Assembly (NCBI GenBank): GCA_002269645.1
Contig: NIVC01004204.1
Coordinates: 1-55,416 of the forward strand
DNA from: Macrostomum lignano
Taxonomy: Eukaryota
DNA length: 55,416 nucleotides
Reading direction: 5' to 3'
The position numbers and the translations under genes are program-made. How positions within the stretch are numbered: the first letter of the stretch is position 1; each line of letters opens with the position of its first letter. Below the pieces are notes generated by a model, which searched no databases, had not been told where the DNA came from, and worked only from the letters and a program-made list of their open reading frames with translations. Of the stretch, positions 5,945 through 47,771 are shown piece after piece.

Positions 5945-7291
5945 CTTCGTACCTCACTTTACTCTTCCAATTTTTTTAAACTATCGAATCGGTATCGGAT
6001 CCGTCATCCGCCTTTCTGCTCAGGAATTTATACTCGAGCGAACCGCCCAATGACAGATGGAGCTGACTTACAATTGGCTCATCGTTTTCACCTGACCTAT
6101 TGTTGGCTTTGGGGCTCTCAGATATTCATCTCAGAGACTGATTTTTTCCTCGCTACATGTACGCTCGTAATGGAACAGTCGGAATGAAAGTGCAGTTCAC
6201 TTGACTATTGAGTGTGTAGCGGGCTCCTACTGGCTTATTCGTCAATGCGAAGCTAGTTGGAGGAAAATTCGTGAAGAAATTCAAGAGAAAAAGCCTGAGA
6301 TAACGTTTCTATAAGGTCAAACACTAACCTGCAGCATGCAGTTTCTCACGGATTTATCGTTATGTCGGCGATATATAATGATAAATTTCGGGTATAACGC
6401 ACAATTTACCATATACAAAAGCTAATATAATCGTAGACTGCTGGGTTAAGGATTAATCCGACACCTTTTTTAGCTGGAGAAAAGAACTTCTGCAACTGGG
6501 ATCCCTGGAGCGGGCTTTGCAATTGGATGCACACAAATCATGTACATGTACAATATTAATATATAAACGTTACAATTGCAGTCAGAAAACAGCAATAAAT
6601 AACAGCAATAAAAATTGTCGAAAATTTGTGTCGAAAAATTTGAGAGGAAATCATTTAGTTCAATGATAATAACTGTGCGTTACTGACACCCGTGCCGCAA
6701 ATCGGGGCAAACAAATTAATAACAAATCAGAGGAGAGTCATTATAATCCGTTAAAACAAAAATAAATAAATCATGTCAAAAAATCGGTCAATTCAATCTC
6801 TGCTGCTCAGTCAAGTAAGTTTTCAGAATTACAGCAACAAAATCGAATTATTATCGAGATTTTTTGGGAATTTTTTTCACAAACTTCTAAATTTACCGAC
6901 AGGTCAAGAAAACTGTCTAAAGATTTATGGATGAAAATTGCTCCGTGAAAACAGAGTCGCATAATATCATTAAAAAAACAAAAACACCGCCAAGTTCTTC
7001 GCAATAACGCCCTAAAGAAACCTCTAAGATAGAAGAGGTAGCTACATTACATAGTTCGACGAAAAAATCTCAGAGAATGTTGAAGAACCAGTATAGAATA
7101 GAAAAGGTTGACTTGCCTAAACATAGTTGGAAGTTTAAAGGACAGTTCCAACCGTAATTTATCACATTTTAATAGAGAAAATATATCGCTGAGTTTTATA
7201 AATAGAATTGCTAAATATTTGCCATCATATAAGTTACATTTTTATTTTATAGATCTTCTTAGCAATGTCAGAGTTTGTATTTTTTGTTGTT

Positions 7292-13835: not shown

Positions 13836-14400
13836 ATCAAATCAAATCAGTTATCCACTAAAAGTAAGCAAGAACAGGCGCTAAACGTTGCTGCCCATTT
13901 CGCTGACCCCTGGCGACAACAGGCAGCTGGTGCTGCGGTGTTGCGCAAAGAGTTCCGGTGGTGCCGGTGTCCGCAGCGCGGTCCCCCTCCAGGAGGTGGA
14001 TTGTCGCTCGCCCGATAGCCCTTAGGTAGCGGACGAGCTGGCAGAGATTCTCGGGCCTGAAAACGTCGGAGAGGTCCGGGTTTGGGCCGAGCAGGGACAA
14101 CTAAAGCACTCTAGTGTCATAGTGTCCTAAACGAGTGTTTAGTTGTCCCTGGGGCCGTGATAGGTGAGCCTGACCTGAGTAAAGGCAGGGCATTCACAGA
14201 TGAAGTGCTCCGCATTCTCGACACCGGAGAGGCAGAAAGGGCATTCCTCACTGCGGATTTTTCCCTGCAGGTGGCGATGCCTGGCAAAACAGCCATTATC
14301 CGAGAGAGTCCCTGATGTCCCTGCGGTTGAGTCCAATCAGGGCCCCGCCCTGCGATGGAACTGCGAGCCGGAATCCAGGCACGGTGCCGGTGGGTCGGGG
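13836..14400 (-). mobile_element. Degenerate 3' fragment of a non-LTR retrotransposon related to the element at 26.9-31.6 kb
   Basis: Reads ALIGLNRRDIR...GCFARHRHLQG...[53 protein letters not shown], collinear with the CCHC-containing ORF2 C-terminus near 31200-31450. Short (TGATT)n tail at ~13836-13850. Interrupted by a 60-bp hairpin insertion. Confidence 0.8.
14092..14151. mobile_element. 60-bp hAT-like mini inverted-repeat element
   Basis: TIRs CAGGGACAACTAAA / TTTAGTTGTCCCTG. Flanks gggccgag (14084-14091) and gggccgtg (14152-14159) form a 7/8 TSD. Removal restores the LINE frame TYLGPNPD. Confidence 0.8.
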
Positions 14401-15674
14401 TCACGACGCTAAGCCATAAGAAACGATCCGGTTTGCAAATGCAGAATTTTTACTAATAATGGACCAAATAATAACACATTCGTAGTTAGCGGACAATGTA
14501 ATCAAGAATCCGCAAACGCATGCCTGCAGCATCAAGTCTGTAGTCACCGCCGTCGTATAAAATCTCTTGGTCAGTAGTTAAAGTCTCAGGAAATAAGAAA
14601 ATGGATAGCCAGGGAGCAGACTCATTTGAGTCCTGCAGTTTGCGCTCTGTCACGGGAAACCCGAGGCTCGCTCGAGTCAATTAGCTAATGCTTTTCTGAC
14701 GCCCAGTTCGCCCGGAGACAGCTGTGCAAAAAGAGTCCGCAGTCTGGTCTATTTGGTCGCGAATTTTCCAGGCCACAGACAGCCTCAATATCTGATTTGT
14801 TGGTTTTGAGAGGCCATTTAAGCGTGCTTAATTAGGAGCACTCTTTATCTGGCCTCTCTTTCAGTAGTTTGATTTTATTGCACTTTGCTTGATTGCTTGG
14901 TATTCGCAAGGCAGGCAAGCGTCTTTTCAATGACTTACTAGCGCATAAAAATTTAAGAAGTTGCGAGTGAAGTTAAGCTAAAATTGGACCAATTGCTTCA
15001 TCTTGATCTTTTCCGCTCAATTGAGTAGTTACGTCTAAGCCTTATAGGAGGTCACAATAAGCCAAATGGACAAACAGTGGTCAGTAAGTTATTCAATCAA
15101 GCAACTATTTGAAAATGGAAACGATGTTGCCGTGTATATGGCACTGTGGCGAACTTACAACATAGTAGCTGGTATGGTAATTAGTCTTAATAAATCTGCA
15201 TAATAGCCTATGGGCCCTTTCGAGACCAATTTAAGGCCAGAACCTCGCTGTAATTACTACTTTTATTAGTATTTTCACCTTGCTGGACATAGCCTTGATT
15301 GATCTTTAATGACCTCAGACTTGCAAGAACCCCTAAGAGGAAGAGTAGGTAACGTTGGGAGTACCACGTGCTGCGATACAGCAAGTAAAGTTACAAAATG
15401 GACCCCAAAAAAGTTGTCGGACAACTCGAAATTATATGTGTTTAATAGCTGCAGTCAGTAACTCGGTACTCAATAAAGAGATCGACCGGAAGTGCATGCG
15501 AGCGACGCGAGAGGTGACAGAAGAGGCGCTCTTTCACACCTTGTCCGACACGATTTTTGCCAAAGTAGCAAACGTATTTAACAGTAGGTATCAGATTTTA
15601 GTTTTACTGGAACGCTTTCATTGTATCCTTGAATCCCTAGTCTATTTACTAAGATAGTTTGTACGGGGTGCAAT

Positions 15675-15704
15675 CAGGGACTACTAAATACTTAGTAGTC
15701 CCTG
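15675..15704. mobile_element. 30-bp hAT-like mini inverted-repeat element
   Basis: CAGGGACTACTAA-atac-TTAGTAGTCCCTG flanked by the perfect 8-bp direct repeat ggtgcaat (15667-15674, 15705-15712). Confidence 0.8.
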
Positions 15705-16664
15705 GGTGCAATACTCAAGTAAGCTGGTTCTTACTGGCCGGCGCACGCGTGTGAGTGCCCACAATGTTTCAGAGTCTAAGGCGTCAGGATATTTCAGGAC
15801 AAAAAATATCAATCAGATGCTGTAAGTCATGACAGAAAGCTGCGCGCTTAATGAGCTCTGAGACTGGCAGGCCTCCTTCATTTGAGTCTTCACTCGGGCT
15901 GGTTAGCGCTGCAGACCCGTATTACTTCTAGGCTTATTCGCGAGCACCAAAACGTTCGCAGCAAGAGACGACCTATTGACTAGTTGGTCCATCAAAAACA
16001 CCAGAGAGGGCGACGCGGGGTGCCAGATTTTCGTAGATCTCTCAGTGCTTCGGGATGTCATATGTTTCTTTTCTATCCTATGGGGAGAAGAATGCCGGTT
16101 AATGTACCTAGTTGTATAGATAATGATCTGAGTAACTCCGTGCGTAGAGACGAGACTGTGTGAGATCCATACCTGGAAGGAAGAGCTTTTCCTAATCGAA
16201 CTCAGCAACGAAATGCTAATTTTTCTCTGTTCGCCCTAGTGTTTCTTTTTGCACCTGATGTATTGCTTTTGAAGTTAAGTACATATAAAATTGTAACTCT
16301 TTGGGAAGTTGAAAATTTGGACCATAACCATAAATTTTGCGTGCATCACATAAAAATGCAGTGCAATATTTGGGAACCAAGGGTGCAATATGAAAATATT
16401 CGTACGCTCGTATGTCTGAGAAGACTTCAACTGCAGCAGATGTTGCTACACTTGAGTAGAACTCAGAATAAATTTGACGGAAGTTTATTGAGCATGTTAA
16501 GCTCGAGCAGCTTGTCTTATAAACAGGCTGCTTAAGTAAATAAGTAACAAGTTCCAAAGCATCTGTAAAACTGTATTTTTCATTAAAGCAGGTTTCCAAC
16601 TTTATGAAATGTTTCTCAGGCAAACTTTTTTGTACGATTTTGTCTCTGCTGGCTGTTGCCTTCA

Positions 16665-19600
16665 TCACTCCGGCTCCACTCGAAACTCGTCGCCCAAGAA
16701 GAGAGCCAGCCAGTACAGCACATTCACGGCCAGGAACGAGGCTGGAAATATGAATCGAGACGCCCGATCGATGCAGGACTCCGAGTTGGGACCGGATGTT
16801 CTACGGCTCTCCTTCAGCAGCATGTACTTCCTGTCTCCGCGCAGGCAGTGCAGGAACATGCTCGGGCAGGAGTCGCCGCCGCCAACGCCGGTTGGTCGGC
16901 CAGCGGCTTCTTCGACGTGTCCGTCGTTGGAGAAGTTCGGTCTCCATTGATTGCTGTCTCTTTGCGAGTGTGGCCGGCGATGCAGTCTGTTCCGTGTCTG
17001 CGAGTCGTCTTCCTCAATCAACTGAGCGCCCGCATTCTTCAGAGTGGTCGCTTCGGGCTCGGCGGAGTCGATAGAAGCCTGAGCAGCGTAGGAAATTTTG
17101 ACTTACAATAAATGTGAAATATTTGCTGCATTTTTAACAGACATTGTCTACTTGAGACAGGGTGGGGGCTGTGTGCGTCAATGGCGTCAGACCAAAGCAG
17201 ACCCAAGCGAACATTCCAATTTAGCAGTTAGCAAGATTTCAATCCATAATATTACAATTTGACTGCGCTTAGAATCGAGCCTGGGCCGCTGGAACATAAG
17301 AGCGCTGGCTAACGGCTACTACTAACAGGCATTAACATGTAGGTAAAACTTGTTGCTTCAGGTAGCACCTGCCAGTTTATTGTACTGATCTATAGACGTT
17401 AATACTCCAGCATCTAGCTTTGAGATTATGGTATTTGAAATCAATAATCATATATAATACGCTTGTACAAATAACAAATAAAAATTAACCTCCTTGGAGA
17501 TATACTTTCCCAAGCTACAACGGGAGCCGAAAGAATTGTGTATGAAGGAGAGATGTAAAGCTACTTATCAGCGCGCGGCTGATTATTTTGATTACACAGT
17601 TGAGCACCGCTAAGCCGCGCACCTGGGGTCTCTTGGGAATTTCCACATTGCCAGTCTTGGTGAAATAGTTCACTCCCGCGTACTCCAGCAGGGCGGAGAA
17701 CACGAAGAAGAAGCAGACCAGCAGGAAGACGTCCAGAGCGGTGGCGTAGGACACCTTCGGCAGGCCGATGCGGCCAGTCAGCGTGATGGTGACGCTTGTG
17801 AGCAGCGTTGTGATTGCTGCGGGGTTCCGATGAATTATAGGTGAACAATAAGCTTGTCAACCGGTTTTAGTCGGAGAAAGGGTTAGAGTTAAAAAATTGA
17901 GGGTTAAAACTTGAAAACATAAAGTTTCAATCTCCTGCAAATACATCTCTTTATTACTAATAACAAACCACTAAGCAACCATACATTCCTCATCATGTAC
18001 TCATGCTTAATCTATCACCGATTAACACTAACCCTAGCACCAACACCTCACCAAAATAGCCAACTCACAAGCACACCAATCCACAAGCACACCAATCCAC
18101 AAGCACACTAATCCACAAGCACACCAATCCACAAGCACACCAATCCACAAGCACACCAATCCACAAGCACACCAATCCACAAGCACACTAATCCACAAGC
18201 ACACCAATCCACAAGCACACCAATCCACAAGCACACCAATCCACAAGCACACCAATCCACAAGCACACCAATTCACAAGCACACCAATCCACAAGCACAC
18301 CAATCCACAAGCACACCAATCCACAAGCACACTAATCCACAAGCACACCAATCCCAAAGCACACCAATCCACAAGCACACCAATCCACAAGCACACCAAT
18401 CCACAAGCACACCAATCCACAAGCACACCAATCCACAAGCACACCAATCCACAAGCACACCAATCCACAAGCACACCAATCCACAAGCACACCAATCCAC
18501 AAGCACACCAATCCACAAGCACACCAATCCATAAGCACACCAATCCACAAGCACACCAATCCACAAGCACACAAATCCACAAGCACACAAATCCACAAGC
18601 ACATCAATCCAGAAGCACACCAATCCACAAGCACACCAATCCACAAGCACACCAATCCACAAGCACACCAATCTACAAGCACACCAATCCACAAGCACAC
18701 TAATCCACAAGCACACCAATCCACAAGCACACCAATCCACAAGCACACCAATCCACAAGCACACCAATCCACAAGCACACCAATCCACAAGCACACCAAT
18801 TCACAGGCACACAAATCCATAAGCACAGTAATTGAGATTTTCACTAATTCACAAACACACAAAAATCAATCAAAAATCAATTTGCAAGCAACTCAGCACA
18901 CTTCAAAAGCAAAGAATGCTAAAGCACACAATGAAGGCTGAGAAACGCACAGAGAGTCACACGGGCCGGGGTCGCCTCCCTGTTGATCCAGAAGCTGACC
19001 CAGGAGATCGCCACAGTCATGTAGGAGGGCAGGTAGATCTGCAGTACATAGAATCCGATCATCCTCTCCAGCGGAATGGTCATGCTGAGCAGGTTTCGAT
19101 ACTCTGAAAAGTATCGTTTCCTCTATCGTATCCAGCTTTTTGTTTAAGCAGTAAAATTAGTTCAACTAGCGCAAAGTTGGGAACGCCCCATCAGCTGAAC
19201 TTACACAGGTTGGGAAACACAGGATAAACGGATTAAACTTCTTGGTTTAAAAAATGGTCAACGATAATTCAATCTGGTTGATATTTTTTCAAGCTACCCT
19301 AGAAGACATGGCTGAGTGGACTATCAAACTCCAGAGGTGACTTATGTCATTCAGGATGCAGAGGGTTTTTGCCAGACTCACCTTTCCCTAACCGGGTATG
19401 CTGATGCGAGAACAGCACCCTCTCCTGACGGAACAGAAACTGCGCCATGGCGGTCACCTCTACGCCCAGATTTTTGTTAGTTGAATTGACCACCGTGTCG
19501 GGAATGTAATGCAGGTGCGGGCCGGCTCTGGCCTCCTCCCACCACAGGTACACCAAGTTGTGCGAGTCGTACGCGACTGGAATGCGTTTTTAGCTGAATC

Positions 19601-20670: not shown

Positions 20671-23597
20671 GTCTGTCTGTCTGTCTGTCTGTCTGTATGT
20701 CTGTCTGCCTGTCTGTCTGTCTCTCTCGTATCACTCTGGATCTATTTTCCAGCTTTAGAATCTTACACTAAGAGTGTTGGATAACACACAGTATTAGGAG
20801 CGATAATTATTTGAATACCATTTTCTCCTCGTCAATCGGTCCGAGGTTTTTGATGAGCATGTTCACTGACACCGCCACCGGGTCGTCATCTGGAGGGAAG
20901 AGAAAGTGGATTAATAGTATTGCTTTAACCTCTGTGTTATTAAAAGTTTGTGCGAAGACACCTTATGTGATCTGTAATATAAAAGTAGTTACTCATGTTA
21001 CGTCCTTTATGTACTTTAGTAACTCCACTTGCCAAGAAAGGCTGACAAAATGAATTCAAGCATGGAGTGGCCTGTTAATCACAATTAAACTGTGACTCAT
21101 TTTGAGTCTGTTGTCCCGCTAAGCCCCAGCCAGATTATTCCCACGCACACTCGCCCATGTCTCAGCCAACAAGACTTCACCGCTAAAATTTCCATAAGTT
21201 ATTTCCGAGCCGACCCCGGGCTCGCTTCACAAATTTTTCGGGGATCAGAGCGAAAGCTCGTAGCTCGCAGCCTGAGCAGTAAAGTTTACATTCAAGAACG
21301 AAGCTCCAGTCTTACTTTCTGACTCTTCGCTCTGCTGTGCCTCTACTTGAGCAGCGGAGCGGCATCTCAGCGCCAACTTCGCCCGCCATACTGTCGGGCC
21401 CGCGATCCCAATCTCTGGGATTTTGACACCGAGTTGAAAATGATGAACGACACGGGTCGGTCTTAGTTGAGGTGGTTTTCCAAACTCACTGTGAGCAGCC
21501 AGTCCCCATCTGAGTCTCCTGGGCCTGGGGATAAACAACTCCCGGTTTGCCAATGGGATTTGCTAATCCGCTTTCGGCTCACCTCAACCCGGCAATCCGG
21601 CTTCATGCCCTGCGATGCGAGCCGCACCGCAAATAACCGCTTCAAAACTTATCCAGCATTTTTACATTTCACTTCTATTCGAATTTCTCATTGTTGAAGA
21701 GCCATTTATTTCCTTTAAACATGCAGAGCTGCTGAAGCGGTTGCTTGAGAAATTTTCTTGGATTAAGCAAAAGTACACTCGGACTGGAGAAAGAGCAGTT
21801 TAACCAGAAAATATCTATGATAATATCTATGCAGAAGCTATCTTCGCAGTCAACGCAGAGAGCAGGAATGGCTTGAATTTTTTAATCCTGCTTAAGTCAG
21901 CCTAGACTTGGCAGGGTCAACACCAGAAACTCTCCAGCAGTGCAGGCACTTTTCCTTTGTGTCTGCTAAATGCTCGTTCAATGCATTGCAGGCCCTGCGG
22001 CTTTATGCCTGATAGCTTGGAATGCATTTTGCTGCCAAATTTGTGTGTGGGCCTGCATGCTTGCTTCTGTGCTGCATCAGCTGTTTCCTTTGCTCACCAT
22101 GTCTCTCCCTCTCTCCCTCTCTTCTCCTTTCCCTCTCCCCTCTCTCCCTCTCTTATCCTTTCCCTCTCCCCTCTCTCCCTGTCTTCTCCTTGCCCTCTCC
22201 CCTCTCTCCCTGTCTTCTCCTTGCCCTCTCCCCTCTCCCTGTCTTCTCCTTGCCCTCTCCCCTCTCTCCCTGTCTTCTCCTTTCCCTCTCCCTCTCTTCC
22301 TGTCTTCTCCTTTCCCTCTCCCCTCTCTCCCTGTCTTCTCCTTGCCCTCTCCCTGTCTTCTCCTTGCCCTCTCCCTCTCTCCCTGTCTTCTCCTTGCCTC
22401 TCCCTGTCTTCTCCTTGCCCTCTCCCCTCTCTCCCTGTCTTCTCCTTTCCCTCTCCCCTCTCTCCCTGTCTTCTCCTTTCCCTCTCCCCTCTCTCCCTGT
22501 CTTCTCCTTGCCCTCTCCCCTCTCTCCCTGTCTTCTCCTTGCCCTCTCCCCTCTCTCCCTGTCTTCTCCTTGCCCTCTCCCCTCTCTCCCTGTCTTCTCC
22601 TTGCCCTCTCCCCTCTCTCCCTGTCTTCTCCTTGCCCTCTCCCCTCTCTCCCTGTCTTCTCCTTTCCCTCTCCCCTCTCTCCCTGTCTTCTCCTTGCCCT
22701 CTCCCCTCTCTCCCTGTCTTCTCCTTGCCCTCTCCCCTCTCTCCCTGTCTTCTCCTTGCCCTCTCCCCTCTCTCCCTGTCTTCTCCTTTCCCTCTCCCCT
22801 CTCTTCCTGTCTTCTCCTTTCCCTCTCCCCTCTCTCCCTGTCTTCTCCTTGCCCTCTCCCTGTCTTCTCCTTGCCCTCTCCCCTCTCTCCCTGTCTTCTC
22901 CTTGCCCTCTCCCTGTCTTCTCCTTGCCCTCTCCCCTCTCTCCCTGTCTTCTCCTTGCCCTCTCCCCTCTCTCCCTGTCTTCTCCTTTCCCTCTCCCCTC
23001 TCTCCCTGTCTTCTCCTTTCCCTCTCCCCTCTCTCCCTGTCTTCTCCTTGCCCTCTCCCCTCTCTCCCTGTCTTCTCCTTGCCCTCTCCCCTCTCTCCCT
23101 GTCTTCTCCTTGCCCTCTCCCCTCATCCTCTCTCCCTCTCTTCTCTCTCCTTTTTCCTCCTCTCCCTCTCCCCTCTCTATCTCTCACTCCCTCTCCTCTC
23201 CCTTTCTCCCTCTCCCCCTCTCTGCAAGTTTAATAAAATAATACATCAAGGCAGGCATTGACACCCAGTCTGTGTGCTGCTGATCACACTACCATTAGTG
23301 CTTGGCCAGTAACTGAACGAGTGCTAGGCGTTGATCCAGAGGAGCAGCTCACCGATAACCTCTCTTTCCCCAGTCAGGTTGTTAAGCTTGAACTCCAGCC
23401 CAGGCCGCAGGTTGCTGTCGTACCGGCTGCTGTTGAGCATCTGGTCGAGCACCCGGGAGATGCGAACCAGCTGGGAGGCGTTGGCGGAGACCGCGGCTGC
23501 GTCGAGACGGCTGCGCGGGGGTGGCCGCGGCTCCCCTGAGCTGCGGTGCGAATCGGGGTTGAAGGTCTCAAAGCCAGACCATGCGCATTTCGGATAA
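16665..23597 (-). CDS. Cys-loop ligand-gated chloride channel subunit (GABA-A alpha/gamma or GRD-like); 5' end unresolved
   Basis: Exons 23597(or 25310)-23353, 20889-20819, 20507-20278, 19745-19663 (83 nt), 19576-19382, 19103-18951 (153 nt), 17816-17623, 17078-16665, all phase-consistent GT-AG. Motifs [26 protein letters not shown], Cys loop [16 protein letters not shown]1 [24 protein letters not shown]2 [27 protein letters not shown]4 [11 protein letters not shown]...N..YW. Confidence 0.92.
18060..18825. repeat. 16-bp minisatellite (caccaatccacaagca)n, intronic
   Basis: Roughly 48 visible tandem copies inside the intron that splits M2. Confidence 0.95.
20563..20722. repeat. (TCTG)n microsatellite, intronic
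   Basis: Direct reading. Confidence 0.95.
22100..23222. repeat. Polypyrimidine complex minisatellite (ccctgtcttctccttgccctctcccctctct-like units)
   Basis: Direct reading; explains the spurious long ORFs at 21957-23261. Confidence 0.95.
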
Positions 23598-25250
23598 CTA
23601 GAGTGGGAGTGGAGAGGGGTAGAGTGGGAGTGGAGAGGGGTAGAGTGGGAGTGGAGAGAGGTAGAGTGGGAGTGGAGAGGGGTAGAGTGGGAGTGGAGAG
23701 GGGTAGAGTGGGAGTGGAGAGAGGTAGAGTGGGAGTGGAGAGAGGTAGAGTGGGAGTGGAGAGGGGTAGAGTGGGAGTGGAAAGGGGTAGAGTGGGAGTG
23801 GAGAGAGATAGAGTGGGAGTGGAGAGAGGTAGAGTGGGAGTAGAGAGGGGTAGAGTGGGAGTGGGAGTGGAGAGGGGTAGAGTGGGAGTGGAGAGAGGTA
23901 GAGTGGGAGTGGAGAGAGGTAGAGTGGGAGTGGAGAGGAGTAGAGTGGGACTGGCGAGAGGTAGAGTGGGACTGGCGAGAGGTAGAGTGGGAGTGGAGAG
24001 GGGTAGAGTGGGACTGGTGAGAGGTAGAGTGGGACTGGCGAGAGGTAGAGTGGGAGTGGAGAGGAGTAGAGTGGGACTGGCGAGAGGTAGAGTGGGACTG
24101 GCGAGAGGTAGAGTGGGAGTGGAGAGGGGTAGAGTGGGAGTGGAGAGGGGTAGAGTGGGAGTGGAGAGGGGTAGAGTGGGAGTGGAGAGAGGTAGAGTGG
24201 GAGTGGAGAGGAGTAGAGTGGGACTGGCGAGAGGTAGAGTGGGACTGGCGAGAGGTAGAGTGGGAGTGGAGAGGGGTAGAGTGGGACTGGCGAGAGGTAG
24301 AGTGGGACTGGCGAGAGGTAGAGTGGGAGTGGAGAGGAGTAGAGTGGGACTGGCGAGAGGTAGAGTGGGAGTGGAGAGGAGTAGAGTGGGACTGGCGAGA
24401 GGTAGAGTGGGAGTGGAGAGGGGTAGAGTGGGAGTGGAGAGGGGTAGAGTGGGAGTGGAGAGGGGTAGAGTGGGAGTGGAGAGGGGTAGAGTGGGAGTGG
24501 AGAGAGGTAGAGTGGGAGTGGAGAGAGGTAGAGTGGGAGTGGAGAGGGGTAGAGTGGGAGTGGAGAGGAGTAGAGTGGGACTGGCGAGAGGTAGAGTGGG
24601 ACTGGCGAGAGGTAGAGTGGGAGTGGAGAGGGGTAGAGTGGGACTGGCGAGAGGTAGAGTGGGACTGGCGAGAGGTAGAGTGGGAGTGGAGAGGGGTAGA
24701 GTGGGACTGGCGAGAGGTAGAGTGGGAGTGGAGAGGAGTAGAGTGGGACTGGCGAGAGGTAGAGTGGGACTGGCGAGAGGTAGAGTGGGAGTGGAGAGGG
24801 GTAGAGTGGGGGTGGAGAGGGGAAGAGTGGGAGTGGAGAGAGGTAGAGTGGGAGTGGAGAGGGGTAGAGTGGGAGTGGAGAGGGGTAGAGTGGGAGTGGA
24901 GAGAGGTAGAGTGGGAGTGGAGAGGAGTAGAGTGGGACTGGCGAGAGGTAGAGTGGGACTGGCGAGAGGTAGAGTGGGACTGGAGAGGGGTAGAGTGGGA
25001 GTGGAGAGGGGTAGAGTGGGATTGGAGAGGGGTAGAGTGGGAGTGGAGAGAGGTAGAGTGGGAGTGGAGAGGAGTAGAGTGGGACTGGCGAGAGGTAGAG
25101 TGGGACTGGCGAGAGGTAGAGTGGGAGTGGATAGGAGTAGAGTGGGACTGGCGAGAGGTAGAGTGGGACTGGCGAGAGGTAGAGTGGGACTGGCGAGAGG
25201 TAGAGTGGGACTGGCGAGAGGGAGAGTGGGACTGGCGAGAGGGAGAGGGG
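23598..25250. repeat. 15-bp minisatellite (gtagagtgggagtggagagg-type and gtagagtgggactggcgagag-type variants)
   Basis: About 110 tandem units with two main variants; period is a multiple of 3 and minus-strand frames stay open. Confidence 0.95.
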
Positions 25251-25611
25251 AGATATAGGAGAAATAAAGTAGGAAAAAGGAAATAGTGAAGACTACAAAG
25301 TCCCAAAAGTCTGAAATGTTAGCAGTGAGGAGTGAGTAAAGGATTTCTCCGCTCACCTCACCGACATCCAGCAAAGTACAGGAATCAGCCACTTGCTCAA
25401 CATCGGGAAGTCAGTCGAAACTCAAATTATTAGATTAAAAACACATAGCAGCTCCGGATGCCTTCATATCCGGATGCTTGGCCCTGAGTAGGGTCAACTA
25501 CAACCTTGAGCAAAGTGGATCTTCTGCAAGCTAACAGAGAGTTTTAGCCACTCAGCGACTGTCTGGGAAAAGTGAGCAGCCAATGAGGAATGAGTAGAAC
25601 GGATTGTGAGA

Positions 25612-26922: not shown

Positions 26923-27754
26923 TTGAAACATGAACATAACAAACACTTTGACACTTCCAACAAAAGCGAAACGGAAAGCAATCTGGATGATTTTAATGAA
27001 ATATTGGGATCTGCAGAAATAGGCAAGATCTCCTTGGATGCTGACCTCGGCGGAGCTCTTTTTCTTCGCGAGGGCCAGCGTCCAAAGACGATACCCTATG
27101 TGGTTTTCGTCCCTGCTAAGAGCACCGCAGCTGGACCAGACGTTATCCGCCGGGTCCTACTGCGTCTGAACCCCGACCTCCCTGCTAGTGGACTGGTGTA
27201 TCACCGCCGAGTCCGCAGGGGGGAGATGGGCAACTCAATTGTCCTCGGCCTTTCCAGCACTTGGGTGAGTCGGTACCCTAATGGATCCTCTTTCCAGCTG
27301 GGTGCCCTCAAGCTCAAGATGCGCCGAGGAAAGTCTGCCAAAGGGAAGGCTACTGCCAACCCCGGCATCTCCGGCAAGAGCGGGGCGCAGTCTAAGGCCC
27401 AAGGAAAGGCGCAAGCCGATCCCAAAGCCAAAGCTGTGTCTCGCCCCTCTGCTAGCAGCAGTTCGGCGACCGCGGTAACGGCTCCGGCCAAGCCCCGGGA
27501 ACCAAATCTGCCAGTCGGAGAAGGAGTTGAGGACGAGGCCGGGTCTTCGGAATCCGAGCTCTCCTCGGCCACCCTTGTGGGGTCTGAAGGTAAAGATGCA
27601 GATGAGGAAGCTTCCTCCATCCTGTCGTCGGAGCCTGAGGACTCTGCTGGGGGGCCGGTGGGGTGAGGAGGCCATGGACGTCGACCAACTCCCATCTCCC
27701 AGTCAAGCCCCAGCGGCCTGGGACGAGGACGATCTGTTCTCCAAGTCTCCTTGA
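26923..27754 (+). CDS. LINE ORF1 (gag-like), probably frameshifted in a G-run near 27655
   Basis: 247-aa ORF 26923-27666 directly upstream of ORF2, with a basic/acidic low-complexity tail. The overlapping frame ending at 27754 is the likely original end. Confidence 0.65.
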
Positions 27755-27793
27755 TGGCCCGGGGCTCTAGCCAGACATTGCATTTAATACAGT

Positions 27794-30700
27794 ATGACTA
27801 AGCTCCACGCTGCCAAAGGAGCGACATTCTGTCTGCAAATAAATTTACAGCATTGCGTATCTGCGTCAGTAAATCTGATGAAGATTGCTGAGCTGTACAG
27901 GCCAGGCCTCATCCTGATCCAGGAACCCTGGATGCGCAACGGTAAGTTGCCCAACATTCCCTCTGGCTACTCTGATTTTTATGTGTGTGGCCCGGGGAAC
28001 AGCCGCCCTAGAGCGGCTATCCTCGCTGCTAGCCATCTTCAGGCTTAGCTGAGGACTGATCTCTCTGATGGAGACCTTTGCGTCATCCAATCTAATCATT
28101 TCTCTCCGCGTACGTGTCTTGTTGCCTCGGTTTATATCCCAGGCGACAGAGACCCTGCTCCCGAGAGTTTACTGCGCCTTGCGCAGTACTGCGAGTCCCA
28201 GAACGCTGAGCTGTGCTTAGGGGCGACCTCAACGCGCACCACAAGCACTGGGGCAGCAAAGATACCAACACTAGAGGAGAGGAGCTTCTGGCCCTCATCT
28301 CTAACACAAACCTCATGCTCTGCAACCGCGGCAGCACTCCTACCTTTAATAATGGCAGATGGACCGAGGTCCTCGACGCCACACTCGTTACCCCAAGACT
28401 CTTTGACAGAGTTGAGGAGTGGAGAGTCTGGTCTGAGGAGCCCTCCCTGTCTGACCACTGCTTTATCGCCTTTAACATCGCGGACACTAAAACCCAGTCT
28501 CCGATCACTTGGAGGCGCAATATCCGCAACACTGATTGGGCGGCCTACAAGGCTGCCCTTGATCTGCACCTGCAGGAACTCACGGACTTACGTCCGATTG
28601 AGACCTGCGAGGATGTGGATCATATGGCTGAGACGCTGACAGGTTGCATTATTGCAGCCTACGAGCGGCTTGTCCTGCTCGCGCCTACAAAGGCAAGACT
28701 TCGTCGCCGTGGTGGAACCCGGAGCTGGGGAAACTCAGGCGGAAGGCCAAAAGCCTTCATCGCCATGCCATGAAGACCGGAAACCCGGAGGACATGGAGC
28801 TTTTCCGGCAAGCCTCCCGCAATTTCAAATCTGAAGTGCGCAAGGCCAAGGAATGTAAGTGGCGCCAATTCTGCAATGAATTGGATCAAGACAGACCTAC
28901 TTCTAGGCTTGTCAAGGCCCTTACAATGGACAAAATGTCCAAATTAGCCATGATCAAAAAAGATGATGGCTCTCTTACTAAAGACCCTGAAGAAGTGCTT
29001 CAGCATATGCTCAGCACATTCTTCCCGAGGGTACCTACTGCTAGACCGGAGCCCAACCATTCGATGGATGGAGCCACCCTAGCGGCGGGCATTGTCACTG
29101 AAGACCTAATCGCTCGTGCGGTCAGAACCTTCAAACCCTTCAAATCTCCTGGACCTGATGGTATCTACCCTGTTCTCCTTCGTGAAGCAGCCAAGATACC
29201 CTCGTTCCTGAGACTCACCCGCAATCTTATGCGGGCCTCTATCCAGCTGGGATACGTTCCCAAATGCTGGACTGAAGCTCGGGTAGTCTTTATTCCCAAA
29301 CCTGGGAAGGGTGACTACCAAAGCGTCAAGGCCTTCCGGCCTATTAGCTTAACGTCAGCAATGCTTAAGCTCACTGAGAGGCTTATTCTCTGGCGGCTGC
29401 TATCCTGCGAGCTGACAGTGATGCCCCTCAGCAATAATCAGCACGCCTTCCGTACTGGGAGGTCGACTGACAGCGCCCTGCATGCGATTGTCGAGAAGAT
29501 TGAACGGGCGGTACTGGGTGACGGTAACGCCCTGGCTCTTTTTCTCGACATTGTTGGCGCCTTCGACAACGTTATCTTTGAAGCGTTTTAGAGGGCCCTT
29601 CAAAATCGCAAAGCTCACGCTACCCTCATACGGTGGATCATGTACATGATCTCTAACCGTACGGTCACTGCCCAACTTCTTGGGCAAACTGCCTCCGCCA
29701 GAGTCTGTAAGGGTGGACCCCAAGGCGGAGTCCTCACCCCGACGCTCTGGAACCTGGTCATGGACGCTCTTTTGAGTGACTCCCGACCCGACCCCGTCTT
29801 CAAAGTCGGGTATGCTGATGACGTCACGGCCATTGTGGCAGGACCGTCTCCCAGCACGCTCAGGGATCTGATGCAGAGCTTTATCCGCAAAGCAGAATCC
29901 TGGGCCAATGACAATGGTCTGGAACTCTCTGAGCCCAAAACCGTTGCCATTATGTTTACCAGCAGACTACGCTGGAACATACGTCCTCTGCAGCTCTACG
30001 GCAGAGATATTGCCTTCGCGCACCAGACCAGATGTCTCGGGGTCACACTTGACCACCGGCTCAACTGGTCCTTCCACGTGAAAGCAAAAGCCAAGCGTGC
30101 CTCAGCCATCCTGGCCCAGCTCCGACGAGCACTTGGCACTTCTTGGGGTCTATCCCCAAAGCGGCTTTGGTGGATCTATACTTCCGTTGTTAGACCTGCC
30201 ATTACGTACGCCTCGGTTGTCTGGGTTAGCGCTACCCAGGTCAAAAGCCATGCAGACCTGCTCAACACGATCCAAGGCAGAGCGTGTAGGCTCATCTGCA
30301 ACGCCACCAGGTCCACGCCCTTTGCTGGCATGGGGGCCTTCCTTAATCTTCCGCCTCTTGACCTCTTCGTCAGGGGTGAGGCAGCTAGAATGACGCGGCG
30401 TCTAATTGATGCCGGCGTCAAATTCATTTACATGAGAGCACCTGCTAAGCGGAACCTTGTCCCGCATAGCGACCTGTGCCTCAACTTTCTCAACGAGTGT
30501 CAGGCCAATCGCGTCTTCACCGATGGCATTGCCTCAACGCTCAACCTGAGACAGCGCTACTCCGTAGCTATCGACTCGCGCGATAACATCAATGACCAAT
30601 GGAACCTTGGTGAGCTTCATTGCTACACCGACGGTTCTAAGCAGTCAGCCAACACCGGCTTTGGTGTTGGAATCTTTCTGAACGGGAGGGTCATCGCTAC

Positions 30701-31532
30701 CCACGCTCAATACACTGGGGTCAACTCCAGTGTTTTCCAAAATGAAGTTCTGGCCATCAGCTCCTGCACTGCAGAGCTTCTCGCCACTGGCGTTACTGGT
30801 AAGAACATCATTTTCCATTCGGACAGCCAAGCTGCCTTGCACGCCATCAGTGGCTGCAGCACCAACTCTGCTACAGTCCTCGACTGTATCAAACTCCTCA
30901 ACGTGTTGGGTTCCACCAACAAAATTACCCTTAAGTGGGTTCCGGGGCATGTGGGGATCCGAGGAAATGAGTTGGCTGACACCCTTGCAAAAGTTGGTGC
31001 CTCCGGCTCCTCTCTCGGCCCCGAACCTCTTGTCCCGATTCCTGGCTGTGTCATCGACTCGCGCATCAAAGCGTGGATCAGGACCCAGCATCACTCGACT
31101 TGGGCGAACTGCACTACCTGCAGGCAATCCAGAGGCGCTGTCCCTCAGCCCTCTCACCAGCTCCGGAAGCTCCTCTTGCGCCTCTCGCGCAGAGACATCC
31201 GGGCTGCCACCATGACCCTCTCTGGTCACGGCTGCTTCTCCAGGCACCAGTACCTGCAGGGCAACGCCACCAACGCCACCTGTAGTTTCTGCAACTCAGG
31301 TGACGAAACCGCTGAGCATTTCGTCAGCATCTGTCCCGCCTTCACGCGGGCCAGACTCACTTACCTCGGGCCACACACATCTATTACTGAAGCGTGCAAA
31401 CCCGAAAACTTTAATCAGCTCATGCGCTACCTTCGGGCCACCCGCAGGGCTGAACTCTCCTTTCCAGAGAGCACTATAGCTGCTGGCGACACTGGGGGAC
31501 CTCCCTGGGCGGCGCCAACCCTCCGTCCATAG
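27794..31532 (+). pseudogene. LINE ORF2 (AP endonuclease, reverse transcriptase, RNase H, CCHC), disrupted
   Basis: LQINLQH, LIQEPW, GDLNAHH.HWGS, SDHC (APE); KSPGPDG, FRPISLTS, QHAFR.GRST, FLDIVGAFDN, GPQGGVLTP.LWN, YADD (RT); YTDGSK, SDSQAAL, WVPGHVGIRGNELAD (RNase H); C..C.......HF...C. In-frame TAG at 28046 and 29589; 1-nt shifts near 28220 and 28668. Confidence 0.92.
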
Positions 31533-31960
31533 CGACGCGTCGGCCGTTCAGGGACTAGCGGAATGGGCGCCCGCGCCTTCCCGCTGTGTCCCCTCCGGGA
31601 CAGCCCTGCAGCTAAGTCAAGTAAGTCAAGTCAACAGGCAAGAGTTAACAATAGCTCAGACTGCTCAGAATACAAGGTGTAAGCGATGCTCAGACTATGA
31701 CCGGCAGATGACTGTGCAATGACTCAAATATCAGCTTTGCAGATCGTAATAATGCCTTTAATCGAGAGATTTAAGGTAGGTGACAAACAACGGCTTTACC
31801 TACAGCAGCAGTGACTCCAAAGCCGGCAGTGGATGCAGCTGATGGATTTCATCCAGGGCAATCCAGCTGTGACGGCCCGCTGCCAATCTGCTAGCGAGTG
31901 AGTCTCAGCTCGAGCTGGCTCACACAGGCAGCGAAGCGAAGCAGCTCTGCCAGAGTGAAT

Positions 31961-31997
31961 CATGGACAACTAGAGTACTCTACTCTAGTTGTCCATG
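31961..31997. mobile_element. 37-bp hAT-like mini inverted-repeat element
   Basis: CATGGACAACTAGAGTA-ctc-TACTCTAGTTGTCCATG flanked by the perfect 8-bp direct repeat gagtgaat (31953-31960, 31998-32005). Confidence 0.8.
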
Positions 31998-32899
31998 GAG
32001 TGAATCTAATCGGATTATTCCCGTGCCAGATTCTGCTTCACCTGAGCTTCAGCCTGCAGCCTTCTGGGCTCGAAAAATCGATAAATTGTAAATAATAAAG
32101 TTAGGATAAATTATAAAAAAACGGTTCATGCTTTATGTCGATTGCTAATTGACTTCGTCTCAAAGTCATCTCAAAGTCGTCTGTCTGTACATTACACTCG
32201 GCGTTTTCCTTCAGTAGCAACTCAAAAAGTTTCCGATGCAGATTGCCAAGACCTCGGTGTGCTGCCGAGCTGCATCAGATCAATTTCATTTCAGTGAGTA
32301 CTTGTTCTGCATCCTGACTGCAAAACAGCTTCTCAAACAACATTAGCATTGAGGGATCAAGAAGATATAACTGATCAGAGCACTCGTGGCGAGTTCGCGC
32401 CCGCATTTGAAATGAATTTATTTAAAATTCAACTTACTATTATCAGTTTAGACAAAGCCAGCTCAATTCGAATAATCAAGTAAAATACAGCAACAACAAA
32501 AGCAAAGTAAAAAACGCAACCCAAACAAATCAACTCATGCGATCAAGGTCCGTCAGATGACGCTTCCCACCTGTAGAAGTCACCGTTGGCGCAGGATAGT
32601 GAAACAGGACCTCGGTTTTAGATATATAGTACACTACTAAATGGTTTATAATCGAACTAATCTACGCAAAATTGAAGTTACCCCATTACAGAAACGACAG
32701 TGTACTAAAAAACACAAACTCAGTTTATTCACTACAGTAGGTTGAAGAGTAAAAGGGAAAAATCACGGCTTTCGTTAAATCTCGATAATTATTCATTTCA
32801 CTCAAAAAAACAAAAAATGAATCCCAGCGTAAAAAATTCTGCGATAATTTTTTATTAAATTTACATGAGTAAGCCGCATCTTATCTAAATGTATAACTC

Positions 32900-34201: not shown

Positions 34202-34980
34202 TCAGCGGCGGACAAAGAAGTCGCCGCTGCTGGCGCTGCTGAGCGCGGCCGGGACCGCAGCAAACTCCAGCAGGTGGCACAGGCGCTGCTGCTGGCTGAA
34301 GATCACCGCCTGGCAACCGGAGCGGCACCGGTACAAGCACTCGGGCAGCCCGGCACACTGCAGTGTTCTGAAGGCGGGCGCATCCGGGACGCTCAGCTCA
34401 ACGAAGGTCCGGTTACCGGGAACGAACACGTTCCGGTCTGCAGTTTAAAATGAGCGCCAGTTGCATTAATACCAAGCCTTTCTACATAGAAAGAGATTTG
34501 TACTTTTAACCAACTCATGCAAGCGTCTTCCGAACTGCCCGTGTAGCTCAGCCGGAGCACCCGGTTTCGGTAGTCGCCTCCGCAGTTCTGGCCCGAGTTT
34601 CCACTGCAAGCGAGATTGCATTCCGAGTCAGAAGCAGCGCCCAGCGACCCGTAGGAGTTGCCGCAGAAGCACCAGTATATGGCCTGCAGAGCCGCGAACT
34701 GGAAGCCGCCCAGAGCGCAGACGCTGCTGCACAGCTCGTGAGTCATTATCGAGTAGCTGCCGACAAAAGCGCCACTGGCATCGTTTATCGGAGATACCTC
34801 GGAGCTTCCGATCCGTATGAGGCCAATGTGCTTCATGTCATTGACGTCTCTCACGCCATTCGCGTCGTCAACGAAGCAGCCGAGGTCCGAGATCTGGAAC
34901 TGGCGGCAGAGAGCGGCGCAGATCAGGCAGCTCAGGATCGGCATGCCGGTCCTGTACAGAGCCGGCATGGTAGGCTGCAT
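34202..34980 (-). CDS. Secreted WSC + PAN/Apple domain protein, copy 1 (2 exons)
   Basis: Exons 34980(or ATG 34968)-34536 and 34437-34202. Signal-like PILSCLICAALC. WSC motif LGCFVD...MTHELCSSVC..GGFQFAALQ..WCFCGNS...ECN.ACSGNSGQNCGG..RNRV. PAN motif C...C.SGCQAVIFSQQQRLCHLL. The donor position is inferred from copies 2 and 3. Confidence 0.82.
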
Positions 34981-36850: not shown

Positions 36851-38160
36851 GGAACTTCACATTGCCGAGCACGCTCTTCCATAAGGTTCGGCGTAGTGAA
36901 AGATGCTGCTAAAATGTTTTTTGGCAATGTGAAGTTTTGGCCTAGTGAAAGAGAGTGCTTTTCAGGAAAGTGAAATTTTTGCCTAATGAAAGCGCCCCGT
37001 GAATTTGTTGCGGTTGTAAACTTTTATTGAGTTTGTAATATTTGTACGTTTGTAACTCGCGCTAAAACTATCAACTCTTTCGTTTCAGACGACACACAAA
37101 TCTCGAAGTACAGTTAGTTACAAGCAGATACAGTTGTTCATTGTAGTAAATGAACAGGACAAGTATGCAAAACAGATTAAGCGTTGTTGTTGAAAGGCTA
37201 AACTTTGTAATTAAAACGTAAAAAAAAATAGTTACTGTAACATTCACATGGGTATTAACGGCTTAATAAGCCTTAAAAGAGTTAGTAACCAGTTAATGAA
37301 ACAGCGCTTGCAAAGCTTGCAGGAGTAGAATTAGTTTAGTGATTGCTGATTATCGATTATGTTAAAATATCAACTCTCAGTGTCAGAAAAACAATAGGAG
37401 GAAGTCCGCAAATGACTAAAAACTTTCATTGCAATGAACTGAGGAATTATATTGATACAAAAGTACTTCAAATAATAAGTTCGCAATTCTGTCTTGACTA
37501 AATAAATTTCACCAGTACGAACCACTAAATTAAATTGAATCAAAAAGTGCATTGAAAGGTGAGTACTCGTAAGTTTCGGGCTTCAAAAAAGAAATGTAAA
37601 ATCCTGTGTCCTTTGCAAAAAACTGAAAGTGTGCAGAATTCGGCGGCCAGCCGCTTGTATCCGAGTAGCAGGACAGTTGAGTCTTCAAAAGATTACAAAG
37701 CTTCTGTTTGAGAGGGAACCAAAGGCAATAAATAACTATAACACGCCAATCAATTTCTCTGGTTTTGAATCCTGACAAAAATATCCGATTGCACGTAAAA
37801 CTACTCTGTTCTAATCAACAATTAACAGAACAAAAGCAGAAATCGAATGCCTAACACACAGAAGTGCATTCGCAAAGATTATAAAGGAAAGTACATAAAA
37901 ACATTTTGGTAAAAGTAAAAAAGGTTTAGCATTTTCGGATGAGAAGCAAAAATAGGTTCGCGTTCAATTTCGGCCAGTTGATTTCAGACGCAGACGTCTA
38001 CAGTTGTTAGTACTTTGAGTACTTTTGAGTACTTTAAAGTCTTTAAGTAGGCTTAGGTATGCTTGCTAGTTGACACTGTTTGTTTTGATTTGCCTCTAAA
38101 TTTCGGTTCTTACAGCTCGTCCGCTCTGCTCAGCTGCACCAGCGCCTGCTTCATTCGCAC

Positions 38161-38988
38161 TCAGCCACGGACGAAGAAGTCGCCGCTGCTTTCGCTGCTG
38201 AAGGCGGCCGAGACCGCAGCATACTCCAGCAGGTGGCACAGGCGCTGCTGCTGGCTGAAGATCACCGCCTGGCAACCGGAACTTTTACTGGAGCACAGAG
38301 ACACGCACTGGATCCGACTCGGAGCGCTCACAGTCGTAAAGTTCGGCGCATCAGGGATGTTGAGTTCGACGAAATTCCGGTTGCCGCGAACAAAGAAGTC
38401 ATTACCTTCGATTTGCAATGAAATAATTTGAAGTTGAGTTGAGTTGAGCCACACTGAAAGGCATCTGATTGTCTGCTTAAAAGTTTGTTTGTCTGTCGCC
38501 AAAATCCAATGCAGCAACATACGAAGAACAAAAATTAAACAAGTGGCCACCAGCAGCAGCAACTCACCGTTGGTGTAGCTCAGCCGGAGCACCCGGTTTC
38601 GCCACATACCTCCGCAGTTCTGGCCCCAGTTTCCACTGCAGGTATCGCTGCACTCCCAGTAAGGAGCAGCGCCCTGCGACCCGTAGGAGTTGCCGCAGTG
38701 GCACCAGTACGCGGCCTGCAGAGCCGCGAACTGGAAGCCGCCCAGAGCGCAGGCGCTGCTGCACACCTCGCGAGTCATCTGACCGCAGTTGATAGAATCG
38801 TATATCTGAGATACCTCGGAGCTGCCGATCCGTGTGAGGCCGATGTTCTTCATGCCACCGACGTCTCTCACGCCATTCGTGCCGTCAACGAAGCAGCCGA
38901 GGTCCGAGATCTGGAACTCCCGGCAGAGAGCGGCGCAGATCAGGCAGCTCAGGATCGGAGCAGCGCAGAGGATCCGGCAGAGAGGCAT
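38161..38988 (-). CDS. Secreted WSC + PAN/Apple domain protein, copy 2 (2 exons, ~221 aa)
   Basis: Exons 38988-38568 and 38405-38161; donor G|GTGAGT, acceptor cgaag|GT shared with copy 3. Same WSC and PAN Cys patterns. The 162-nt intron is stop-free and in frame. Confidence 0.87.
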   Translation of the reverse strand: MPLCRILCAAPILSCLICAALCREFQISDLGCFVDGTNGVRDVGGMKNIGLTRIGSSEVSQIYDSINCGQMTREVCSSACALGGFQFAALQAAYWCHCGNSYGSQGAAPYWECSDTCSGNWGQNCGGMWRNRVLRLSYTNGELLLLVATCLIFVLRMLLHWILATDKQTFKQTIRCLSVWLNSTQLQIISLQIEGNDFFVRGNRNFVELNIPDAPNFTTVSAPSRIQCVSLCSSKSSGCQAVIFSQQQRLCHLLEYAAVSAAFSSESSGDFFVRG

Positions 38989-46700: not shown

Positions 46701-47739
46701 AGTGTCGCAAGCTGAGACTGAAGGCCGCTGTTTCCTGCCGCACTTCCCAGTGCTGCGGCCAGACAAGACTACAACAAAAGTGCGGATAGTCTTTGATGCA
46801 TCGGCTGCCAGATTGAACGACCAGATCCTCCAGGGCCCCAAACTGCAGAGGGATTTGGTTGACGTGCTGCTTCGGTTCCGCCGACACCCGATTGCGATCG
46901 CATGCGACGTAGCGGAAATGTATCTCCAGATCGAAATGGACCCGAAGGACAGGCCGCTGCACAGTTTCCTTTGGCGGGACGCCGATCCTTCAAAGCAACC
47001 GGATGTCTACGAGTTCAACAGAGTGGTGTTCGGCGTCACCAGCTCTCCTTTCTTGGCACAGTTCGTTACCCGCTGCCATGCTGAAAAGTTAAAAGGTGAG
47101 CTTCCAGAGGCGGCCGAGACAGTACTCCACTCTACCTATATGGATGACAGCCTGGACTCTGCGCCCACCGAGGCAGCCGCCTGCAGGCTGTACGATCAAC
47201 TCAGTGAGCTCTGGAGGCGCGCCGGCATGCACGCGCGCAAGTGGGTCTCGAACTCGAGAGCTGTGCTCGATAGAATCCCACCTGAAGACCGTGCAGCAGT
47301 CAGTCAGTCAGTCAGTCAGTCAGTCAGTCAGTCAGTCAGTCAGTCAGTCAGTCAGTCAGTCAGTCAGCTGCTCACCTGACAGTCCGGAAGTCCTCAAAGG
47401 TCAGCTGGTGCAGCTGACACGCCTTGGCTTCGGCCAGCGCCACGCAACGCCCGGAGGCGGCGTGGGCCTCCCTGAACGGCACCCCGCGGCGCACCAAATA
47501 GTAGGCCAGGTCGGTGGCCAGCATGTCGCAGCTGAGGGCGCCGGCGCAGGCCTCCGGGTGCACCGTCGGCGATTCGAACCACGGCTGACACGGTGTCAGC
47601 TGAGTCGAACAAGCCCTCCTTGTCCTCCTGCAGGTCCTTGTTGAAGGCGCTGGGCAGGGACTTCTGCACCATGAGCAGGGACACCAGGTGGCCGCACAGC
47701 CGTCCGGTTTTGCCGCGGATGAGCTCCAGACTGTCCGCG

Positions 47740-47771
<32 letters not shown>

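Follow-up and report, generated by a model that had tools for sequence, protein, structure and literature searches.

Short palindromic insertions with 8-bp target-site duplications in Macrostomum lignano, possible excision scars of a P-type DNA transposon

We analyzed contig NIVC01004204.1 of the flatworm Macrostomum lignano (NCBI GenBank assembly GCA_002269645.1, positions 1 to 55,416 of the forward strand; this whole stretch of 55,416 nucleotides is called the window below) and found in it three short palindromic elements, E1, E2, and E3, each lying between two copies of an 8-bp target-site duplication. A fourth element of the same build, E4, was recovered from a metagenome contig. The evidence supports the view that all four are remnants of cut-and-paste DNA transposons from a family that duplicates 8 bp of its target. 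They are insertions with an 8-bp duplication and a repeat-only content, their arms have a common endpoint, and their centers are of the type produced by repair. We consider it likely that repair of some kind left E1, E3, E4, and probably E2, as scars; the full statement, that they are immobile donor-site scars left by the P-type cut of a longer transposon, stands in our judgment evenly poised between right and wrong. The elements are a new instance of a known phenomenon, not a new kind or class of mobile element.

Structure and occurrence of the elements

The sequence at 15667-15712 reads ggtgcaat-CAGGGACTACTAA-atac-TTAGTAGTCCCTG-ggtgcaat, which is E1 with its duplications, exactly as a first-pass annotation of this DNA had given it. 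E1 is a palindrome with a single mismatch at its center and divides into 17 + 13 nt with no filler; equivalently, two ends of 16/17 nt that differ by one A/G overlap on TA. The two relatives that the same annotation had placed at 14092 and 31961, with a common end consensus and their own 8-bp duplications, proved real. The termini CA(G/T)GGAC(A/T)ACTA are common to E1, E2, and E3, and the duplications match at 8/8 positions in E1 and E3 and at 7/8 in E2 (GGGCCGAG versus GGGCCGTG). The arms of E2 are perfect for 14 nt, or extend to 19 to 20 nt if a 1-nt bulge is allowed, and its anatomy is 17 nt, a 26-nt interior, and 17 nt. This interior holds an imperfect tandem, TAGTGTCA/TAGTGTCC, similar to the arm segment TAGTTGTCC, and is closer to the arms of E2 than its shuffled versions are (P about 0.01 to 0.02). 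The center of E3, GAG-TACTC-TACTC-TAG, holds a tandem TACTC-TACTC, and its CTC filler is, judged from that repeat, a templated copy of the adjoining arm. The DNA hairpin of E1 has an energy of -12.2 kcal/mol (z = -7.7), and the single-stranded hairpins of the elements are very stable (z of -6.9 to -9.5), values that merely restate their palindromic nature.

We scanned the whole window for the 7-nt core CA[GT]GGAC or its complement. Among the 19 occurrences, only the pairs belonging to E1, E2, and E3 extend without mismatch to the 12-nt consensus; the family end pattern, left and right, is CAKGGACWACTA...TAGTWGTCCMTG. A strict scan for an exact 8-bp direct repeat around 20 to 400 bp with perfect terminal inverted repeats of at least 10 bp returned E1 and E3 only, and 200 second-order Markov nulls contained no such structure (0/200). 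A relaxed scan (duplications of 5 to 10 bp, mismatches, elements up to 8 kb) yielded no extra member and no longer relative in the window. Two solo ends, at 8255 and 49015, fall within coding exons (SAXO-like and lyase) and were rejected as chance matches; what looked like a 20-bp scar at 53904 proved to be a simple repeat within a duplicated segment. An RNA gene finds no support, since the window had no hits to Rfam (at gathering thresholds) or in a tRNA scan.

E2 allowed a protein-level empty-site comparison with its non-long-terminal-repeat (non-LTR) retrotransposon host sequence. With E2 in place, tblastn gave two high-scoring segment pairs in different frames, broken at E2. When E2 and one duplicate were deleted in silico, a single 94-amino-acid segment pair resulted (54% identity, E = 2e-26) that was colinear over the junction, and the retrotransposon protein alignment against RLTYLGPHTSITEA ran through the restored junction uninterrupted. 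E2 is a true insertion. The restored alignment also shows that GGGCCGAG was the original target and that the right copy mutated later, so the 7/8 duplication was formerly 8/8. DNA-level paralogous empty sites were absent from the window, and the protein-level comparison succeeded for E2 only. The host sequence and its paralogue are two copies of one non-LTR family (Exo_endo_phos_2, RVT_1, RNase_H), at 13963-14309 (minus strand) and 26923-31532 (plus strand). Open reading frame (ORF) 2 of the long copy is split over at least three frames; the short copy, which contains E2, is 5'-truncated and has about 54% protein identity. The reverse transcriptase ORF at 29640-31532 shows 75 to 95% identity to M. 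lignano UniRef proteins, as befits a window of Macrostomum nuclear DNA, and E3 lies ~430 bp downstream of the ORF2 stop codon.

We searched 241 million metagenome records with CAGGGACWACTA-N(2-32)-TAGTWGTCCCTG, a pattern covering both arms and leaving the duplication outside. It matched at a single locus, positions 1759-1790 of contig Ga0075481_10013197 (L001). This element, E4, reads gtaatggc-CAGGGACAACTAGAATATTCTAGTTGTCCCTG-gtaatggc, with a perfect 8-bp duplication; because such a duplication has a probability of 4^-8 by chance, the match is not a chance one. E4 is a 32-bp perfect palindrome with arms perfect for 16 nt and the anatomy 15 + TA + 15, CAGGGACAACTAGAA-TA-TTCTAGTTGTCCCTG, in which two ends of 17 nt overlap by the TA. 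The contig is eukaryote-like (40% GC) and has nothing else in common with the window. The same pattern matched nothing in prokaryote genomes (596 Gb) or in IMG/VR, where a single-end pattern hit three phage contigs (L002 to L004) that we assumed to be chance matches; L002, the one inspected, had no inverted partner. Just upstream of E4, positions 1555-1714 of its contig hold a frame-shifted ORF fragment (...LMDGTFKLVQKPF...) that we take to resemble animal MULE/FLYWCH-type transposases, and E4 may thus sit inside another decayed transposon.

The four elements follow a common scheme (4/4): duplication, a left end of ≤17 nt, 0 to 26 nt of filler, a right end of ≤17 nt, and duplication. This arm anatomy supports the earlier suggestion that they are made almost entirely of terminal-repeat sequence. 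They differ in everything else that we compared, with lengths of 30 (E1), 32 (E4), 37 (E3), and 60 bp (E2), four centers, and four terminal haplotypes, no two alike. The ends vary between elements at position 3 (G/T), position 8 (A/T), and position 13 (A/G), and within every element the same variant is present in both arms. Mirrored variants and four haplotypes point to separate derivation from parents with symmetric ends rather than descent by mutation from one 30-bp founder, and the end sequences argue for several parent subfamilies rather than one tiny amplified founder. The arms of E1, E3, and E4 share an endpoint, TA at positions 16-17, and E2 and E3 agree at positions 18-20 (CTC). The parental terminal repeat would contain an internal 8-bp palindrome, GAGTACTC, at positions 13-20 (in E3, 31973-31980). 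Since GAGTACTC is palindromic, fill-in of an overhang recreates the next bases of the repeat, and scars could seem to retain more than 17 nt. The sample comprises four elements, and their detection was biased toward short palindromes.

Likeness to P-element excision footprints

The P-element transposase makes an "unusually long 17 nt" stagger and 8-bp duplications (PMC7776569), so each donor flank keeps 17 nt of terminal repeat as a 3' overhang, and P excision footprints are described, in the account of Beall and Rio (1997) given in PMC7776569, as end-joined 17-nt 3' overhangs. Chan et al. (2010) reported P{wa} junctions that consist of the duplication, ≤17 nt, microhomology or a 0- to 49-nt insert, ≤17 nt, and the duplication (PMC2895639). 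One junction, acccagac-CATGATGAAATAACA(TA)TGTTATTTCATCATG-acccagac, is a 32-bp palindrome found in 5 isolates; another, ...AAC(AT)GTT..., is a 30-bp palindrome found in 14 isolates; others are 17 + TGT + 17, and 17 + 42 + 17 and 16 + 49 + 13 with imperfect templated repeats of neighboring sequence (PMC2895639). These classes correspond one to one with E4, E1, E3, and E2, and on this match we read the four as end-joined scars of a transposon that cuts as P does. The likeness extends to the 8-bp duplication kept on both sides (8/8 in E1, E3, and E4; 7/8 in E2, with an original 8/8 inferred from the paralogue), to the ≤17 nt kept of each terminal repeat, to palindromes of 30 and 32 bp that arise by joining at AT or TA microhomology, to a 17 + 3 + 17 class and long inserts of imperfect neighboring copies, and to the scars being inert. 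The 17-nt stagger geometry is present in all four elements, with the qualification that E2 and E3 may owe positions 18-20 to the repeat as well.

To our knowledge, the P-element/THAP9 superfamily is the only transposase family with both a long staggered cut and 8-bp duplications, and by this analogy the parent is most likely a P-type element. We infer that a longer parent with a P-type transposase formerly occupied each site. It would be a cut-and-paste transposon with ~20-bp terminal inverted repeats (consensus CAGGGACAACTA(A/G)AG(C/T)ACTC) that inserts and duplicates 8 bp of target, a step shown for E2 and evident from the duplications for E1, E3, and E4. Its transposase would then excise it by a long staggered cut, so that ~17 nt from either terminal repeat would stay on the flank as a 3' overhang, and host end joining would seal the two identical overhangs. 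E4 (15 + TA + 15, 32 bp) and E1 (30 bp) would have been joined through 2 to 4 nt of microhomology, E3 (17 + CTC + 17) with a short templated insertion, and E2 (17 + 26 + 17) with a long insertion of the "T-nucleotide" type. The duplication in the E3 filler and the likeness of the E2 interior to its arms are, as sequence patterns, signatures of alternative end joining. P elements require internal binding sites besides the terminal repeat (PMC7776569), so repeat-only units should be inert. Scars lacking these sites would be unable to move again and would form an absorbing end state that may outnumber the surviving parents. This account is supported by four independent loci, in two organisms, at which a real insertion lies between 8-bp duplications.

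The elements also depart from P footprints. Their terminal sequence, CAKGGACWACTA..., matches that of P, CATGATGAAATA..., at 9 to 10 of 17 positions, which is not significant; a Hermes end matches the family repeat at what we take to be about 8/17, which we judge equally uninformative. The host is a flatworm, and the scars are fixed in a genome, whereas the P junctions come from laboratory revertants; no P-type transposase is linked to these ends, and E2 and E3 keep 18 to 20 nt that appear repeat-derived. The canonical P terminal repeat starts with 5'-CATG, and the first bases are CATGG in E3 and CAGGG in E1, E2, and E4; the terminal repeat of zebrafish Pdre2 starts with CATACC, so CATG is not universal.

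Several observations weigh against this reading as P-type scars. No parent with CAKGGAC ends was found in the window among elements up to 8 kb, and no P-type or hAT-like remnant was detected by a local hidden Markov model or phmmer search of six-frame translations of the window and of the E4 contig. A P-type transposase has THAP, RNase-H-like, and GTP-binding domains, and a hAT transposase has DDE and hAT dimerization domains; for hAT, the probe was a set of hAT-like ORFs from L007, a weak and limited one. A word-seeded search of a large protein collection with the Drosophila P transposase, a probe validated against PDB 6p5a, returned more than 120 P-superfamily proteins, arthropod and environmental, with no Macrostomum protein among them, a weak negative. 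Ten environmental P-superfamily loci (L005 to L014) had unrelated ends, none of them CAKGGAC, and most lacked a clean terminal repeat plus duplication. The CTC at positions 18-20 of E2 and E3 suggests that more than 17 nt of the repeat can be retained, and this agreement needs either templated fill-in (the palindromic GAGTACTC would supply the same bases) or a longer stagger. A CAGGG terminus is a feature more typical of hAT elements than of P elements. [quoted passage not shown]

One of the ten environmental loci, L014 (Ga0540608_018825), is a P-superfamily element with ORFs for TNP-like RNaseH_N, GBD, and RNaseH_C. Inverted repeats of more than 200 bp flank it (about 184-420 and about 6690-6988) and contain internal tandem units, an arrangement that resembles Galileo or Foldback.

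If the scar reading is true, the palindromes preserve, as fossils, the past excision of a DNA transposon with several subfamilies that had not been described before in Macrostomum, a regeneration model whose DNA transposons are essentially uncharacterized. The published M. lignano annotation gives only "DNA transposons 3.05%" of the assembly, and we found no literature on hAT, P, or MITE families in Macrostomum. The stagger of transposase cleavage could then be read straight from genome sequence through scar geometry, and the unusual 17-nt P-type cut would be conserved outside arthropods and vertebrates. The scheme of duplication, ≤17 nt, filler, ≤17 nt, and duplication would serve as an in silico assay for past P-type activity in any genome, and the same assay would reveal the host end-joining signature. 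Thousands of 30- to 60-bp hairpins would escape repeat maskers and could affect assembly, primer design, and local DNA structure.

Alternative origins

The first-pass annotation had called E1 hAT-like and had offered two origins for such elements, minimal mobile units or products of abortive gap repair. Its repair alternative comes close to the excision-scar reading that we favor, and its mobile alternative is not supported. The hAT label is not supported. The 8-bp duplication and the CA start are common to the P superfamily, and the hAT target bias nTnnnnAn is not evident here: T is at position 2 of 1/4 duplications and A at position 7 of 3/4 (GGTGCAAT, GGGCCGAG, GAGTGAAT, and GTAATGGC), in a small sample. 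hAT termini follow the rule 5'-YARNG, and the Ac terminal repeat is of the CAGGG type; E1, E2, and E4 fit this rule, and CATGG in E3 departs from it at position 3. The elements are thus like hAT in their 8-bp duplication and CAGGG-type termini, and hAT also has internally deleted nonautonomous derivatives that arise through faulty gap repair. They are unlike hAT in what lies between the duplications. hAT, MULE, and Transib transposases form hairpins on flanking DNA (PMC5499845), and Ac/Ds footprints hold no transposon sequence, consisting of duplications that show small deletions or P-nucleotides from the flank (PMC5873905), whereas all four elements are terminal-repeat sequence between duplications. 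An hAT parent could be reconciled with repeat-retaining scars only through the rarer route of synthesis-dependent strand annealing (SDSA).

That route defines the strongest rival, which we consider unlikely: near-total internal deletion of a transposon of the hAT type, or another type with 8-bp duplications, by abortive gap repair, in which synthesis from the sister copy stops after about 13 to 20 nt per side, after which the nascent ends are joined. In flies, gap repair most often ends in SDSA followed by end joining (PMC2895639), the 8-bp duplications and CAGGG ends fit hAT, every copy is unique as independent repair events should be, and the 18 to 20 matching nt kept by E2 and E3 exceed what a 17-nt overhang alone gives. 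Random abortion, however, predicts a broad spread from tens to thousands of base pairs, and the arms of E1, E3, and E4 stop alike (15 to 17 nt), with no longer derivative in the window. Since no terminal repeat survives the standard end joining of hAT, the rarer pathway would be required for every scar, and the limited probe found no hAT remnant in the window. The elements resemble KP-type and Ds derivatives of abortive SDSA in that both ends and the duplication are kept, the interior is lost, and each deletion is unique; those derivatives keep hundreds of base pairs per end and stay mobile, whereas here ~13 to 20 nt remain per end with a common endpoint.

A second rival, which we regard as distinctly doubtful, is that the elements are mobile ultrashort MITEs, 30- to 60-bp units of two terminal repeats moved by a transposase in trans and amplified. 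Three copies in 55 kb is a MITE-like density, the perfect duplications and arms of E1, E3, and E4 suggest recent events, and E4 supplies a member in a second organism. There are repeat-only mariner MITEs with a length of about 80 bp. Because the published M. lignano annotation excluded repeats shorter than 200 bp (PMC5730564), a family of this kind could have gone unnoticed, and the earlier expectation that repeat finders would miss these elements is borne out to that extent. Like classical MITEs, the elements have terminal inverted repeats and a duplication, are noncoding and hairpin-forming, and lie near genes or inside repeats; only E2 (60 bp) reaches the usual size of 50 to 800 bp, whereas the other three are 30 to 37 bp. 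hAT MITEs differ further, being usually at least 100 bp, with subterminal binding motifs and families of near-identical copies.

Homogeneity speaks against this rival. Near-identical copies at different loci, which characterize MITEs, were absent among the four (the 55-kb window plus one metagenome match); no identical 30-bp copies with different duplications were found there, and no two elements are alike in length, center, or terminal haplotype. The first-pass proposal of E1 as founding member of a mobile ultrashort family is therefore not supported, at n = 4 only. Wherever copies differ, the difference appears in both arms, a pattern not predicted by descent from a small founder; the arm truncation points vary slightly (13 to 17 nt), as if unconstrained; and the centers resemble repair junctions (TA microhomology, templated duplication) rather than conserved interiors. 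hAT transposases need subterminal or internal sites beyond the terminal repeat, and P transposase needs internal sites too (PMC7776569). The search of 241 million metagenome records gave a single match. The narrower claim that the 30- to 37-bp palindromes are themselves transposition-competent, which would make them the smallest known eukaryotic MITEs, two abutted truncated terminal repeats cut and pasted in trans, seems to us improbable; in one conceivable variant, arm-to-arm correction in a hairpin intermediate would keep the arms identical. If such units were mobile, Macrostomum would hold the family in abundance, and standard repeat finders would not see it.

Chance hairpins, assembly or library artifacts, and palindromic filler from transposon-independent break repair are extremely improbable and effectively excluded: chance does produce short palindromes and 8-mer repeats, and hairpin artifacts can occur in long-read assemblies, but 0/200 nulls held such a structure, four loci share the same 12-nt termini with different flanks and their own duplications, a metagenome assembled independently contains the same structure, palindromes of P-nucleotides from the flanks would vary from site to site, and the termini are, as we take it, unlike SMRTbell, Nextera/Tn5, or Mu ends, which we count against an artifact.

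Other features of the window

Table 1. Elements E1 to E3 and other annotated features of the window
Feature	Position	Strand	Basis or remark
E1 left target-site duplication, GGTGCAAT	15667-15674	.	Exact match to 15705-15712
E1, 30-bp candidate scar: CAGGGACTACTAAATAC + TTAGTAGTCCCTG	15675-15704	.	Palindrome, hairpin energy, arm analysis
E1 right target-site duplication, GGTGCAAT	15705-15712	.	Sequence read directly
E2 left target-site duplication, GGGCCGAG	14084-14091	.	Minus strand codes LGP, conserved in paralogue
E2, 60-bp candidate scar or mini-element	14092-14151	.	Arms and empty-site test
E2 right target-site duplication, GGGCCGTG	14152-14159	.	One substitution since insertion
E3 left target-site duplication, GAGTGAAT	31953-31960	.	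Sequence read directly
E3, 37-bp candidate scar: CATGGACAACTAGAGTA + CTC + TACTCTAGTTGTCCATG	31961-31997	.	17-nt perfect arms, 17 + 3 + 17
E3 right target-site duplication, GAGTGAAT	31998-32005	.	Sequence read directly
5'-truncated non-LTR ORF2 C-terminal fragment, E2 host sequence	13963-14309	-	Protein-level empty-site control
Non-LTR retrotransposon ORF2 (endonuclease, reverse transcriptase, RNase H; frame broken)	28213-31532	+	Paralogue for E2 empty-site test
Frame-broken non-LTR element (endonuclease, reverse transcriptase, RNase H)	28.2-31.5 kb	+	Pfam
SAXO1-2 exons	9.8-11.5 kb	-	Pfam
BEL/Pao-like pol fragment	44.9-47.4 kb		Pfam
Lyase_1 (argininosuccinate-lyase-like) exons	47.4-49.1 kb	-	Pfam

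A BEL/Pao-like gag-pol fragment (DUF1759 and RVT_1; 44346-47379, plus strand) ends in a (CAGT)n-type microsatellite and directly abuts the last Lyase_1 exon on the opposite strand (47394-49086, minus strand). A minisatellite of 30 22-bp units (47981-48642) fills the intron between the two lyase exons. Three paralogous gene copies with WSC(+PAN) domains, confirmed by Pfam, lie at 34393-34980 (minus strand), 38161-38988 (minus strand), and 52955-53467 (plus strand). The third copy is inverted, and its flank at 53840-54010 is an inverted duplicate of the flank of the second copy at 37930-38100. The gene family has expanded locally here, in keeping with the duplicated genome of M. lignano.

Five large minisatellite arrays were present, among them those at 18 to 26 kb and 41 to 43 kb of the window: 18066-18827 (16 bp, 48 units), 22102-23124 (31 bp, 32 units), 23599-25252 (21 bp, 78 units), 41044-43331 (16/24 bp, with a higher-order unit of approximately 970 bp), and 54629-55416 (16 bp, 49 units), which runs off the window end. 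The arrays show strong strand compositional skew and together occupy more than 10% of the window, which agrees with the 13% of tandem repeats reported for the M. lignano assembly.

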